A stretch of 64,000 bases of DNA from Entomortierella parvispora E1425. Its lineage: Eukaryota; Fungi; Mortierellomycota. The notes under the pieces are model-generated. The model saw nothing but the letters and a program-made list of their open reading frames with translations, did no database searches and was not told the DNA's origin. Positions within the stretch are counted from its first letter, which is position 1. Every line of letters begins with the position of its first letter. The position numbers and the translations under genes were made by a program. Positions 1,946-8,889 of the stretch are shown here, piece by piece. The stretch covers positions 1,426,001-1,490,000 of the forward strand of contig BQFW01000010.1 of the NCBI GenBank assembly GCA_020891255.1, in the 5' to 3' direction.

Positions 1946-3379
<1,434 letters not shown>

Positions 3380-3502
3380 AAATAACATTTACAAGTTTGT
3401 CTTGCTACACTTACATTTTTTGTGTTCTCCCATCCTCATTTCCCACTCCCTAAAAAAATCACCAGTATATTTTTTGCTGGAGGACATTTTTAAAAAAACA
3501 AT

Positions 3503-3513
3503 AAACAATCATG
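3503..3513 (+). repeat. Left copy of putative 8-bp target-site duplication, with a 3-nt insertion
   Basis: AAACAATCATG directly before the TIR. The right flank 8890-8897 is AAACAATG, identical once CAT is removed. Confidence 0.6.
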
Positions 3514-4195
3514 CAGCCTCGACAACTGGGCCACTTTTTCGAAAAAAGTGACCATCCTTCGTTGCACAGAAACGGTGGCTTCACTCAATTTTTTGGTGGC
3601 CACCACTTGGTCGCCACTCAAAATAAAGGAGTGGTGCAAAGGTGTCAACAAACCTGCAGCTCCACTCTTTTTCACTCTTTTTCACTCTTTTTCACTCTTT
3701 TTCACTCTTTTTGAGTGATTCCTGCAGGAAAATGGTGATTTGTCCCAAAAAGGATCGCATCCACCAAAAAAAAAAGTGGTCGCCAGTAGTCCCACCAAAA
3801 AAAAGTGGACCTCACTTGGGAAAGGAGTGGTCGGAACATTTTGTGCGACCCAAAAGCAGAGACAAAAAGCGCGTGTGCGGTGCGGTCCAGCGTCTCTCCT
3901 CTCGAGCAGCATGCGCATGCCCATACCATGGGCCACACTAGCTTCAAGCGTGCCGTGGTCTATCTGTTCACGCCTGTTTGTCCACGGATGTTTAATTGCT
4001 TGTCTGCCCTTTTTTTTTTTTTTTGTTTCCCGTCTTTTTCCAATCCTGGCCCAAGTCGACATTCTCTCCCAGTGAAATCGTATCATGGACGCGCAAGAGC
4101 AAGCCCTCCCTCCTCAACAACCCGAGGCTGATCCTGAACTCGTTCCCCAACCTCCACAAAACTTATGGCACCCACTGGTAGCGGGACTTGAAGAC
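3514..4195 (+). repeat. Left terminal inverted repeat (682 bp)
   Basis: Reverse complement of 8210-8889. By eye the only difference is a poly-T of 15 vs 13 nt (4010-4024 vs 8381-8393). The mirrored ORFs in the track translate identically. Confidence 0.95.
3663..3712 (+). repeat. Subterminal tandem repeat (CACTCTTTTT)x5
   Basis: Five perfect 10-bp units inside the left TIR. Confidence 0.97.
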
Positions 4196-4234
4196 TATTT
4201 TTTATGCATCGCTGTGCAGTACATATTCAACTAA
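4085..4234 (+). pseudogene. Truncated TIR-borne copy of the accessory ORF start (37 shared codons + 12 unrelated)
   Basis: MDAQEQALPPQQPEADPELVPQPPQNLWHPLVAGLED is identical to the start of ORF 7871-8320, then YFLCIAVQYIFN-stop once the TIR ends. Confidence 0.7.
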
Positions 4235-4304
4235 TGTTAAGGAAGGACTTCTCGTCATTTTTCTCCTAATGTTTACTCAGCTAAGTCTTATATCTTGAGA
4301 GCTC

Positions 4305-7300
4305 TCACCCAATGTTGCTATCCAAATTTTGGAATATGTCGATATCGTCATCGCCATCATTATAGTAATCGTCCAGTTTTATCTTGTAGCCGGTGTCCCA
4401 GGTAGCCAGCAAAACCAATGCCTTAAGCTTGAGGATACCAAGACGCGTTCTTTTTGCTGTAAGAACGCATCCAGAGACGCTAAAGAGCCTTTCACTTGCC
4501 GCTGAGGAGGCTTGTATACTAAAGAAGATGACAACAAACTGGGACAGGTACTTGAACATGCCTCCATGCACTGCCCACCACTCATGAGGTTTGTTGTAAT
4601 CTTTCAACGGTTCCGATTGGGCAAGTTCGATATAACTCTGCAGCTCCATCGACAGGAGCGTGGTGAGATCCTCAGTAGACTTATCCCCAAAGTCGATTCC
4701 TGTGCGCAGTGGACTTTCAGGATCAGCCGTTGCAAGAATAAGGTCCTCTGCAAGCTGTTTCAGTCTTTCTCCTTCCAATCCAGTGAAAAATCCATCATTC
4801 TTAATATTGGTAGGGTGGAGGTATGTGGCAATGAGGACTTCATCGGCCATATCAGCTGTGGAGAAGAGGCCTGCGAGCTGCCTTACAAACTTTTTCTTGG
4901 AACCGCTCCACAATAGGAATCGTCAACAGAGGGTCGGAACTCAGGACCTTGCGGATCTTGGGGTATAAGCCTGTGATGACAGGGTCGTTGGAGGACATTG
5001 CTACTGTCAATTCTGCGGTGGGTCGCAGGACAGTAAGAAGCTCCTTGAGAACATCGAACTCTTCGTTACTCAGAAGCTGACTACCATATTCTCGCCAAAA
5101 TGTCTTCTCCATTTGCGTGGCAGTAGGCATCTGCGCTCGCGCCTTGACCAGGTCTGTTGCTTCACGTAGCTCCAGAAGGCGCTCTATCATCATGAATCTG
5201 CTGTTCCATCGCGTAACAGTGAATGTGAGAGCCTTTAGTTCCTTTTGTTTTAAGTCGGATCGCGCTTTGCATAGGAGAGTTGATCCTCCGCTTGATAGGA
5301 ACGCCTTGTTGTGTTCTTCAGCCTTGCGGACAATAGTCTTTATATCACCCGTTGCTTCGATGATGTTGCGGATAAACAGTTGAAGTTTATGACAGGCACA
5401 GGGAAACCACGGACCAAAAGTTTCGTCATCGTTGATTAAAAAGTCGAGTTGTTGCTTTCATGACATTGGCGGAGTCGGTAGTACTGCAAAAGGCCTTGCC
5501 TTTTAGCCCCCAAAAATAAAAGGGTTCGCTCTAGAAGTTGTGATTTGTATTAGATCAAGCTGCAGCCAGGGCCAAAGACGACGGCAAGCAGAGCTACCAT
5601 CCACACTTACCTACTATATCCTGGATGTCAACAGCCGTCCCAGAACCAAAGTATTCCTCAAAACCAATCGCCAGAGATTTGGGTTTGTAGGTCTTTTTCT
5701 CGATGTAATGGAACGTGATCCCGATGAATTTCCGGCCAAATCTCTTCCAACCGTCGTAGGTAAAGCAGCCTCGAACGACTCCTGCAGCAAATATTTTGTC
5801 CAGTCGTGCGCGAGCATTTCCGTAAAGCTTGAATACACACTTTCCGACGGTTTGAGGAGAAGGCGACGGGTATGAAAATCCGAGAATTCTAGCGACGCCC
5901 GAGGCATACGGGCCAGTAACCACTGAGAACGGGAGTCTCTGTTGAATCGCGCTGTGAGTAGTGAATAGCTGTATAGCTTCTTGAGTACTCGGCAATATCT
6001 TGGTCAGCTGCGAGGACTTTGGCATTGTCTGGTCATAGAATACTGAATACCCTTCCGCGTTTCCTGCTTCCACATCTACATGAATTGACGTTTGATAGGT
6101 TAAAAATGTGATAGTGTACACCTATGAGTAATTCATTGAGATAGATTACCTTCGAATCCTTGATTTTTTCGGAATGTTGTCAATGCTGAGAGTATTTCTG
6201 GATGGTTCCTTGTAACATGTGCCGTACGCATGCCTGTACCTTGAGATCCTGGCTTATGGTAGTGACATCTGCGGTTCTGACTAGTCTTGACTCGGCAAAA
6301 GAACCATGCCTTTGGAATGTCAGAGACATAAGGAAACTTTTTCCCTGTGTATGGATCAACGGTTGGGGCGTTGATGGTGGGCTGGAGATCAACCTGGTTG
6401 ATTGTGGCAGGATTTGTTGTTGACACCTTCTCAAAGAAATGACGGTGCCATGCCCCTGGAATCGTAAGATCGATCTGCCTTATGGGTATATGTGCGAGCA
6501 TAGACTTGGCCTCCTTGCACACACTATATGGTGGGAGCTGGCCCACTTTCAGTGTTTTCTCGTAGTCTGCTATAGTCATGGATATACCTCCGCCATTTGG
6601 TGGAGGTTCGGAAAGGGCTGGGGTTGACCGAAGGAGTACAGGTGACGATGTACTATCGCCCGTTTGTTCCTGAGTGTACATTTCCACTTCGGACATCATT
6701 GATGGCTCTCGTGAAATGGACGCCACCGATGAAGTTCTACTCAGATTCCTTTGTCGAGCATTCCAAAGTTCCATTGGAGTTGTCTCAACTTCAGCCTCTC
6801 GGGCAGTTGGTGATACGGCTCGGGACGAAGCCCCAAGGTGTATATCTGCAATTGCCCTCGGTGCACCTGGAGTTGGACCACGGATTTGATCCGCAGGACG
6901 TTTCTTTGGAATAGTTGGAGGTACTCTGTAGTGCTCATAGGGCATTCCGGGAGGAGGGCGATACTGTGGATGAATGGGAAGAGTAGAATACTGCATAGTA
7001 TGGTGTGATTCGGTGTGATGCATCCCTGGGTAAGGACTGTATGGTACATCTGAATATGGATGGAAGTGGCCTGGTGGGTGGTAGACAGGTTGATTTGGGT
7101 CTTGAGAGTGATATTGAGGAAATTGATACTGTCCAGGGATATGGTATGCATGGTGAAGCTCATGAGGTTGGGAGTATGGGTACTGAGGACCTCGAGGTTG
7201 GGATGGAACTAGTGGGTTATATTGATGGTGGGAAGGTAGATAGGGATGAGGACGAGTCTGTGGTGCTTGAACAGCCTCATTATCGGTGTGGGAAGGAGGA

Positions 7301-7611
7301 CGAGGATGAGGATGAGGATGAAGGCGAGGAGGAGGATGAGTCCGGGGTGCTTGGATGGTCTCATTATCGATGTTGGAAGGAGGATGAGGACGAGGACGAG
7401 GACCAGTCTGTGGCTCTTGGACATCTTCAGTATCGATGCTGGAAGGAGGATAAGGACGGAGACGTGGACCAGTCTGTGGCTCTTGGGTAGCCTCAGTTTC
7501 GATGTTGGAAGGAGGGTGAGGAGGAGGATGAGGAGGAGGAGGATCGGTCTGTACTGTCTGGACAGCATCATCATCATCGTTGAAATGATGACTATATGGG
7601 TCGTAGTCCAT
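4305..7611 (-). pseudogene. hAT transposase, ~1050 aa, 3 exons, with 2-3 single-base frameshifts (possibly assembly errors)
   Basis: ATG 7611 (MDYDPYSHH). Pro/His-rich N-terminus, then a BED-like finger CRVKTSQNRRC...HVTRNH. Intron 6149-6076; exon with CFTYDGW (D1); intron ~5610-5531; then WGL...TTDSANVM (D2), PWFPCACHKLQL, VTRWNSRFMMIERLL, YLHP, and EWW...IQASSAASERLFSVSG (E, C-terminal dimerisation domain). TGA at 4305-4307. Confidence 0.88.
7224..7512 (-). repeat. Degenerate ~66-bp coding tandem repeat (4-5 units) in the transposase N-terminus
   Basis: Core CGATG(T/C)TGGAAGG-like words at 7500, 7434, 7368, 7284 and 7224 (spacing 66/66/84/60), encoding PPS(N/S/H)xDxExxQxPxTxPRP(H/Y)P units. 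Confidence 0.85.
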
Positions 7612-7870
7612 CGTGAGAGAAATGGTAGTACTATAGATGTTATAGAGAAAAGAAAAGGTAGAAAATAAGGAGGAAAAAAAGGAAAGAGGAAGAGGAAAGG
7701 AAAATTCAAGACAAGAGCATTGGAAGAAGTCAAGAGTTCCCACAGCATGGAGGAAACGGGAAGGTTCACAGTGCTTGCGATAAGCTTGGGCGATTTTCTT
7801 GGTCTGGGGCATGCATGCACACCATGGCCACAAAAACATCGAGGAAAAAATGTGAAGGGCTTCACATGGT

Positions 7871-8320
7871 TTATTGATCAGGTAAGAGATGTGTTTGATC
7901 CAAAGCTGGGTCACCTTGAGCGATTCGGAAGGCAACAACTGCATCGATCAAATCTCTGTGGGTGTTCCTGATGTGACGCAGTCGAATGTTCAAGCCAAAA
8001 TCAGAGCGAATTCTGTAAGGACAGTTCTGAACTTGACATTTAGAGAAGCGAGGACCAGTGTCTCCAGTGGCCCTGTCCTCCAATGCAAAAAAATTATTGT
8101 CAATCGATTGATTCCTAGCAACTCTGATAGGAACTGCGGCGAGGGCAAGCCTGTTTGCAGCGATGCATGCTTGAACTGGAGGGAGCTCACCAATTGGCAA
8201 TTGAAAGTGGTCTTCAAGTCCCGCTACCAGTGGGTGCCATAAGTTTTGTGGAGGTTGGGGAACGAGTTCAGGATCAGCCTCGGGTTGTTGAGGAGGGAGG
8301 GCTTGCTCTTGCGCGTCCAT
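7871..8320 (-). CDS. Transposon accessory protein (149 aa): stand-alone BED-like zinc-finger module paralogous to the transposase N-terminal domain
   Basis: Uninterrupted ORF with C-x4-C...H-x4-H (KCQVQNCPY...RHIRNTH). LPIGELPP..AC..A...LAAVPIR and FRIAQG align to transposase LKVGQLPP..VC..A...LAHIPIR and FRKNQG. Confidence 0.8.
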   Translation of the reverse strand: MDAQEQALPPQQPEADPELVPQPPQNLWHPLVAGLEDHFQLPIGELPPVQACIAANRLALAAVPIRVARNQSIDNNFFALEDRATGDTGPRFSKCQVQNCPYRIRSDFGLNIRLRHIRNTHRDLIDAVVAFRIAQGDPALDQTHLLPDQ

Positions 8321-8889
8321 GATACGATTTCACTGGGAGAGAATGTCGACTTGGGCCAGGATTGGAAAAAGACGGGAAACAAAAAAAAAAAAAGGGCAGA
8401 CAAGCAATTAAACATCCGTGGACAAACAGGCGTGAACAGATAGACCACGGCACGCTTGAAGCTAGTGTGGCCCATGGTATGGGCATGCGCATGCTGCTCG
8501 AGAGGAGAGACGCTGGACCGCACCGCACACGCGCTTTTTGTCTCTGCTTTTGGGTCGCACAAAATGTTCCGACCACTCCTTTCCCAAGTGAGGTCCACTT
8601 TTTTTTGGTGGGACTACTGGCGACCACTTTTTTTTTTGGTGGATGCGATCCTTTTTGGGACAAATCACCATTTTCCTGCAGGAATCACTCAAAAAGAGTG
8701 AAAAAGAGTGAAAAAGAGTGAAAAAGAGTGAAAAAGAGTGGAGCTGCAGGTTTGTTGACACCTTTGCACCACTCCTTTATTTTGAGTGGCGACCAAGTGG
8801 TGGCCACCAAAAAATTGAGTGAAGCCACCGTTTCTGTGCAACGAAGGATGGTCACTTTTTTCGAAAAAGTGGCCCAGTTGTCGAGGCTG
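8210..8889 (-). repeat. Right terminal inverted repeat (680 bp)
   Basis: Mirror of 3514-4195. Coordinate sums are constant (12403 outside and 12405 inside the poly-T difference). Confidence 0.95.
8691..8740 (-). repeat. Subterminal tandem repeat (AAAAAGAGTG)x5, mirror copy
   Basis: Five perfect 10-bp units inside the right TIR. Confidence 0.97.

Follow-up and report, generated by a model that had tools for sequence, protein, structure and literature searches.

A probable second gene in an atypical fungal hAT element: a candidate DNA-binding restraint on its transposase

Introduction

Can a eukaryotic cut-and-paste transposon carry a regulator of its own as a separate gene? To our knowledge, descriptions of hAT elements give them a single gene, and where transposons regulate themselves through proteins that only bind DNA, those proteins are mostly truncated or alternative forms of the transposase. 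The question is raised by a window of 64,000 nt (the whole stretch of DNA analyzed here) on contig BQFW01000010.1 of Entomortierella parvispora E1425 (GCA_020891255.1), in which a hAT element with long terminal inverted repeats (TIRs) carries a small open reading frame (ORF) beside its transposase. An earlier note on this DNA had singled out the frame as a stand-alone relative of the transposase DNA-binding module, and had proposed that an old duplication within the element gave rise to a two-component hAT. Here we report that the small ORF is very probably a genuine, separately expressed accessory gene. We further favor the view that it is the second gene of a two-gene hAT lineage and, more tentatively, that it may act as an element-encoded restraint on the transposase. 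Keyword searches of the literature turned up no hAT accessory gene of this kind, which is not proof of absence.

A separately transcribed gene beside the transposase

The frame of 149 amino acids (aa) described in the earlier note is present, uninterrupted and begins with ATG. It encodes a TIR-derived leader (residues 1-39) followed by a DNA-binding domain of ~105 residues (40-140) with a BED-type Cys2His2 finger at its end. As the note had claimed, the frame stops soon after the zinc finger, 28 residues past the last His, and holds no catalytic domain; neither an RNase-H-like nor a dimerization region is found. The resemblance to the transposase segment before intron 1, seen by eye in four blocks, is borne out by two methods. 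BLASTP aligns residues 41-136 of the small ORF with residues 465-596 of a mechanically derived 603-aa transposase ORF (E 7e-7, 25% identity) and covers the four blocks in the same order, and hhalign, run with a profile of the four stand-alone small ORFs described below, matches the transposase segment with a probability of 97.4% (E 1.2e-11, 107 columns, 29% identity). The small ORF starts to resemble the transposase precisely where the TIR ends on its inner side, and the transposase copy of the domain has an insertion of ~35 residues before the finger that is absent from the small ORFs.

None of the runs listed in a search with the small ORF bore an RNA label; the RNA evidence consists of assembled contigs of a single run (X2, listed as 'DNA?') from the same sample as the short-read DNA run X1. 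Run X2 is evidently RNA-derived, judging from a spliced contig and from the depth pattern, with flank depths of 941 and 408 against 42 inside the element, the reverse of the DNA run. The spliced contig is that of the transposase, with exons at 7669-6150, 6075-5611 and 5530-4219 separated by introns at 6076-6149 (74 nt) and 5531-5610 (80 nt), each bounded by GT..AG when read on the minus strand. The small ORF is covered by other contigs, at 7857-8065 (depth 3374) and 8097-8254 (depth 4355); the break between them is a polymorphism between copies at 8096, both alleles of which occur in the RNA. These depths are ~80-100 times that of the transposase mRNA, and RNA depth is zero over 7670-7856. No joint connects the two units, in line with the expectation in the earlier note of a transcript separate from that of the transposase. 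At the 3' side, an AATAAA overlaps the stop codon and precedes the end of the RNA contig by 13 nt, and the same signal stands at the stop in two of the related elements (P0002 and P0003, at loci L001 and L005). The observations fit a compact minus-strand mRNA of ~0.5 kb, whose transcription start, presumably a short way before the ATG, is not placed because contig depth is a mean per contig and the TIR contigs fit both arms. Table 1 collects the features.

Table 1. Features of the element and its two genes (window positions; X2, the RNA-derived run)
Feature	Position	Strand	Basis
Complete hAT element, 5376 bp	3514..8889	-	Inverted repeats and two further copies
Left TIR (transposase-3' side)	3514..4201	.	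Inverted-repeat comparison
Right TIR (transposase-5' side)	8204..8889	.	99-100% complementary to 3514-4201
Five tandem CACTCTTTTT units, candidate subterminal protein-binding repeats	8691..8740, mirrored 3663-3712	.	Motif count
Left-arm stub of small gene, 49 aa	4085..4234	+	TIR duplication
Transposase mRNA, one 3297-nt X2 contig	4219..7669	-	Depth 42
Domain copy of the transposase (LKVGQLPP ... FRKNQGFE)	6150..6552	-	Ends at intron-1 donor
Pyrimidine-rich spacer, small ORF to transposase ATG (7611)	7612..7870	-	Sequence and RNA
AATAAA polyadenylation-type signal, overlaps small-ORF stop	7870..7875	-	Sequence and contig end
Small-gene transcript part	7857..8254	- (inferred from AATAAA position)	X2 contigs
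Small gene, 149 aa, ATG start	7871..8320	-	ORF, homology, family, fold, selection

Between the two genes lies the spacer, put at ~260 bp in the earlier note and measured here at 259 nt, of which pyrimidines make up 69% in the coding strand; the transposase mRNA appears to start within it, at 7669. The spacer holds a motif, TGCATGCATGCCCCAG, at 7804-7819 that recurs, conserved, in the elements of P0002 and P0003, and a related motif, GCATGCCC, occurs upstream of the small ORF at 8481-8488 in the TIR, with a mirror copy in the left arm. The two may represent a shared promoter or binding element.

A predicted divergent BED-type finger

Structure prediction, proposed in the earlier note, gave a confident model of the small protein that tentatively resembles BED fingers. 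With an alignment of 21 sequences, the AlphaFold confidence score (predicted local distance difference test, pLDDT) was 87.8 overall and above 90 over residues 31-140; this alignment was used in place of one with four sequences, for which the model was poor (pLDDT 54). The model consists of short helices and connecting segments over residues ~31-77, then three strands and two helices, among them strands 92-95 and 103-105 and helix 110-120. The zinc ligands follow the pattern C95-x4-C100-x15-H116-x4-H121 and are invariant across the 21 family members. Cys95 and Cys100 are placed on the hairpin and His116 and His121 on the helix, so that the BED-type Cys2His2 arrangement of a β-hairpin and a helix is present in the prediction. 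In this context, residues ~69-144 of the model weakly resemble the BED fingers of ZBED1, ZBED2 and the Hermes transposase, with two Cys on a β-hairpin and two His on a helix.

Among solved chains, the best matches are ZBED1 (2ct5, Z 3.9, 68 of 73 residues) and ZBED2 (2djr, Z 3.5), followed by a weaker match (Z 2.1) to the N-terminal part of Hermes transposase (8edg). In the clustered AlphaFold database, most of the 30 matches listed are named BED-type, all of them weak with E at least 0.37. A Foldseek search of the model against the PDB and a sequence search of solved structures with the small protein returned nothing significant. At the level of Pfam, the small protein does not reach the threshold of zf-BED (PF02892), which two of the 21 family members match weakly (best E 0.0027), and it has no Myb/SANT match; a match to DBD_Tnp_Mut (E 0.095) was below threshold and was not relied on. 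Residues 31-70 form an additional, family-specific N-terminal part that has no match to BED structures. As modeled, the small protein thus comprises a family-specific N-terminal extension and a divergent BED-type finger, and no further domain.

Family, descent and selection

Searched exhaustively with a profile, 1.84 billion representative proteins contained only 27 members of this domain family, in all of which the domain is either N-terminal in a hAT transposase or makes up a small stand-alone protein. In the longer members it directly precedes the hAT catalytic core (...GSFTxDxWTS...), and because of this placement we regard the domain, from sequence, as the module with which a small clade of hAT transposases would bind DNA. 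Four members are stand-alone: the ORF studied here (P0001) and three from metagenome elements, namely P0002 (156 aa), P0003 (151 aa) and P0006 (190 aa). The four share the signature GLE-x-YF-x-LP-x-G-x-LPP ... AFR-x-AQ, and in the multiple alignment the other three are 53%, 49% and 37% identical to this ORF, respectively. A scan of metagenomes with the small-ORF profile yielded a single locus (L009), which was discarded because it is bacterial and matches a GLEDHF-like peptide by chance.

All three relatives lie beside related transposases, as the proposed two-component system would lead one to expect. The P0002 frame is followed by a pyrimidine-rich spacer of ~250 nt and a transposase that starts with MDYD and has an N-terminus rich in proline and glutamine (P/Q-rich); after the P0003 frame, a pyrimidine-rich spacer of ~290 nt leads to a P/Q-rich transposase start. 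P0006 sits at the other end of its element (L006), convergent with a three-exon hAT transposase that likewise has a copy of the domain; 168 bp separate the two stop codons. Being convergent with its transposase, P0006 cannot be an upstream exon of it. A separate transcript in E. parvispora and a conserved ORF in three related elements together support the reading as a two-gene element.

How old is the split between the two domains? A maximum-likelihood tree of 22 domains places the four small ORFs together in a clade of their own (support 83/80), groups the domains of three partner transposases in a second (94/88), and leaves the deeper nodes unresolved. The separation into two clades implies that the small-ORF and transposase domains split before these elements diverged from one another; on this tree, the duplication is old. 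The age that the earlier note had assigned to it therefore stands, and the intra-element origin does not follow: with the deep nodes unresolved, a DNA-binding exon captured from a different hAT lineage appears as possible a source as duplication within the element. The two genes have diverged to a similar extent, with P0006 and this ORF 40% identical in this comparison and the L006 and window transposases 35-48% identical, which is consistent with co-inheritance of small ORF and transposase.

The ratio of non-synonymous to synonymous differences per site (pN/pS) is 0.44-0.60 in all six pairs of small ORFs and stays below 0.76 at the upper bootstrap bound. Across the same pairs pS is 0.56-0.78, near saturation, and all four frames are open (149-190 codons). 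By these comparisons the small ORF is under purifying selection. Among three genomic copies of the element, there are two substitutions inside the ORF, both at synonymous third positions. Of the four outcomes that the earlier note had named as speaking against its proposal (no similarity, decay in relatives, splicing as an upstream exon, lack of transcription), none was found.

A more distant metagenome hAT (L008) has degenerate long inverted repeats at 166-620 and 4450-5007. At L008:4189-4326, on the minus strand, it holds a 46-aa remnant of the domain that reads inward from the TIR on the transposase-3' side. This remnant and the left-arm stub of the window element, described below, suggest that inward-reading small ORFs beside or inside long TIRs are ancestral in the clade, possibly at both ends.

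An atypical hAT element with long inverted repeats

The element is assigned to the hAT superfamily on the basis of two features, a C-terminal dimerization domain and an 8-bp target duplication. The first is found in 4305-4913 as a match to PF05699 (E 3.6e-13; score 49.5 bits, cut-off 21.4). The second is perfect in L004, one of two copies at other sites of the same genome, which is flanked by GATTGGAG on both sides. The flanks of the window copy, read on the minus strand, are CATTGTTT and CAT(GAT)TGTTT, an imperfect duplication that differs by a 3-bp insertion, and those of the other copy, L003, are of low complexity with an offset of one base between the sides. Both copies are 99.7-99.8% identical to the window copy. 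Contig depth in the DNA run X1 is 460 inside the element, 78 in the flanks and ~960 in the TIRs; taking depth as a rough guide, this corresponds to roughly six copies in E. parvispora E1425 and no excess of TIR-only derivatives.

hAT elements typically have TIRs of 5-27 bp and one gene, features that are typical of the superfamily and do not define it. The present element has neither, with TIRs of 688 bp and two separately transcribed genes, and is an atypical hAT. Both of its ends read 5'-CAGCCTCGACAACTGGGCCA, and its arms are 99-100% identical, one homopolymer indel apart. The first 320 bp of the TIR contain the five CACTCTTTTT units and several A4-5GTGG motifs. The right TIR also contains the upstream region of the small ORF, its ATG and its first 39 codons, and the start of the small gene is consequently duplicated at the left end. 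There, the stub repeats the ATG and 38 identical codons, has Y for H, and runs through ten unrelated codons to its stop. Past the TIR boundary the left arm resembles the full ORF only in short patches (an exact 11-mer and one match of 9 out of 11), for example ATGCATCGCTG. The patches suggest, and do not prove, that the left arm holds a decayed second copy of the small gene.

Two side observations concern the arms. In L004, both arms (L004:9431-10130 and L004:14107-14806) carry a private C>A at element position 593 and a 1-bp deletion at element position 253, both of them absent from either arm of the other two copies. Private changes common to both arms mean that the arms of one element evolve in concert, which indicates conversion from arm to arm or regeneration of one arm from the other. 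Further, the highest summed X2 depth (6868) falls in the bin 4076-4269 over the left-arm stub and is not assignable to either arm: the left promoter copy may fire and give a short transcript antisense to the 3' end of the transposase, or contigs of the right arm may have been placed twice.

Comparison with known systems

Several known systems combine a transposase with a DNA-binding protein, and the small gene shares part of its character with each. InsA of IS1 and the KP and 66-kDa repressors of the P element are transposon-encoded proteins that only bind DNA. Like InsA and KP, the small gene would provide a small, abundant, element-encoded protein with a domain of the end-binding type and no catalytic part, in excess over transposase. 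InsA, KP and the 66-kDa protein are, however, made from the transposase gene, by an untaken frameshift, an internal deletion or retained introns, and carry the identical domain. Here, a separate gene with its own transcript encodes an old paralog of ~29% identity, and repression is a proposal by analogy. A DNA-binding domain free of a catalytic domain is thus shared with these repressors, and derivation from the transposase gene is not.

The hAT element Restless of Tolypocladium inflatum is similarly a fungal hAT with a short N-terminal product besides the full transposase. The short product reportedly keeps the zinc finger and is said to have been proposed as a regulator. Restless has one gene with two splice forms, whereas the present system has two genes and two transcripts, which in one relative lie on opposite strands. 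For Restless, alternative splicing is named in the title of a paper cited in PMC3688495.

PIF/Harbinger elements are two-gene transposons encoding a transposase and a Myb-like ORF1 protein (PMC2528002). Like them, the element described here is a cut-and-paste transposon in which a second gene, transcribed on its own, encodes a DNA-binding protein. They belong to another superfamily, and their Myb/SANT-like second protein is unrelated to the transposase, which has no comparable domain; in our element, by contrast, the accessory protein is a zinc-finger paralog of a domain that the transposase keeps, and a Harbinger-type Myb/SANT second gene is not found. CGGBP-type host proteins, in turn, are DNA-binding-only derivatives of hAT N-termini that have been domesticated many times (PMC8097297). 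The small protein likewise consists of the BED-type DNA-binding region of a hAT alone; CGGBPs are immobile host genes, whereas this gene resides in a mobile multi-copy element with TIRs and target duplications.

Possible roles of the small protein

How might a DNA-binding-only gene restrain its element? An inhibitory role is the one we consider likeliest, if tentatively and by analogy, because the protein has no dimerization or catalytic parts and its message is in large excess. The small protein would bind the repeated subterminal motifs of the TIRs (CACTCTTTTT, A4-5GTGG) or promoter motifs of the GCATGCCC type, at the same sites as the transposase or at neighboring ones. Made in large excess, it would cover the ends and thereby limit either the binding of the transposase or its transcription. 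The outcome would be a copy-number control encoded by the element, as with InsA of IS1 or KP of the P element. More speculatively, and as a possibility on which we would lean less, the hAT lineage of Mortierella-type fungi might be obligately two-component, with inward-facing TIR promoters driving a DNA-binding-only gene that gates the ends and is an ancient paralog once present in both arms.

Several points weigh against the restraint proposed here. The present data do not distinguish a repressor from a helper or from other roles. The two DNA-binding domains are only ~29% identical and may recognize different sites, which weakens a simple model of competition. The structural matches to BED fingers are weak (Z at most 3.9; Foldseek E at least 0.37), and the three relatives lie on short metagenome contigs, with their full elements and TIRs outside view. 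Regarding expression, the evidence comes from one run whose record is silent on its kind and whose RNA nature is inferred; its contigs are strandless, depth is a mean per contig, and holes between contigs prove nothing, so that low-level read-through from the small ORF into the transposase is possible.

Among the alternatives, a helper or cofactor that transposition needs, and that binds the subterminal repeats and recruits or positions the transposase, or bends the TIRs into a synaptic complex, in the manner of the Myb-like ORF1 of Harbinger, is unlikely and yet the likeliest of them. A separate, conserved gene long co-inherited with the transposase would suit it; long, repeat-rich TIRs could need an architectural protein, and selection on the element would favor the retention of a required factor. 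The transposase, however, has a complete copy of the domain and does not obviously need a separate targeting subunit. Moreover, an 80-100-fold excess over transposase mRNA suits a competitor better than a stoichiometric partner, and no interaction domain is evident in the model outside the DNA-binding fold.

We regard as improbable that the protein counters silencing, or activates the promoters of the TIR and the spacer. In Arabidopsis, VANC of the VANDAL Mutator elements binds repeats of the element and keeps its promoters active against silencing by the host. A comparable function would agree with the high expression of the small gene, the presence of the related GCATGCCC motif upstream of both genes, the tandem short repeats in the non-coding ends, and the apparent intactness of all ~6 copies, more than one allele of which is expressed. 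The small protein nevertheless has no similarity to VANC.

Could the ORF be a relic, either the leftover 5' exon of an ancestral transposase or a by-product of TIR extension, transcribed from a chance promoter in the TIR and without any function of its own? We disfavor this reading and give it very little credence. The ORF does begin inside the TIR, the left arm has a decayed stub, and L008 has only a 46-aa remnant, which tells us that copies of the ORF can decay. Four elements with saturated synonymous sites have nonetheless kept the frame open at a pN/pS clearly below 1, the zinc ligands and the hydrophobic core are conserved, the predicted fold is confident, and related elements also keep a poly(A)-type signal at the stop. 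Finally, splicing of the ORF to the transposase mRNA, which would create two tandem DNA-binding modules, is largely refuted and scarcely credible: the ORF does lie near the transposase in the same orientation, the transposase frame is open 5' of its ATG up to 7947 and an acceptor-like CCCCAG stands in the spacer, but the two units have no joint, differ ~100-fold in depth and are separated by zero depth, the transposase contig ends at 7669, P0002 has no conserved splice donor at the end of its ORF, and the small ORF of L006 is on the strand opposite to its transposase.

The self-regulation logic otherwise known from truncated or alternative transposase products seems here to have been fixed as a separate, conserved and highly expressed gene with its promoter in an unusually long inverted repeat. 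Should the protein bind the ends, the element would offer a simple system to study how a eukaryotic cut-and-paste transposon sets its copy number, being small, active, present in ~6 copies and carried by a culturable fungus. It would also show how a stand-alone protein with a BED finger can originate within an element, ahead of domestication by a host, and would warn annotators that small genes in the TIRs of DNA transposons can be real. If the lineage is indeed obligately two-component, it would represent a eukaryotic counterpart of bacterial InsA-type control, reached via gene duplication, and a living intermediate on the path that hAT DNA-binding domains have repeatedly taken to host transcription factors such as CGGBP and ZBED proteins.

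Transposase frame and neighboring transcription

In the window, the transposase gene has extra single homopolymer bases at 4891, 5438 and 5512 that are absent from the short-read DNA and RNA contigs. A broken transposase was considered and rejected, since the mRNA encodes an intact protein of 1049 aa once the three bases are left out; they are probably errors of the long-read assembly or private to the window copy. The proline- and histidine-rich N-terminal region of the protein is encoded by diverged tandem repeats of ~66 bp (window 7314-7534, 78-81% identity), and the N-termini of the transposases in related elements are also P/Q-rich and of low complexity.

At the left end of the element, an X2 contig of 1130 nt (depth 941, window 3300-3533) runs from a flanking gene into the element by 20 nt. 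It looks like read-through of a neighboring transcript into the transposon at this site.

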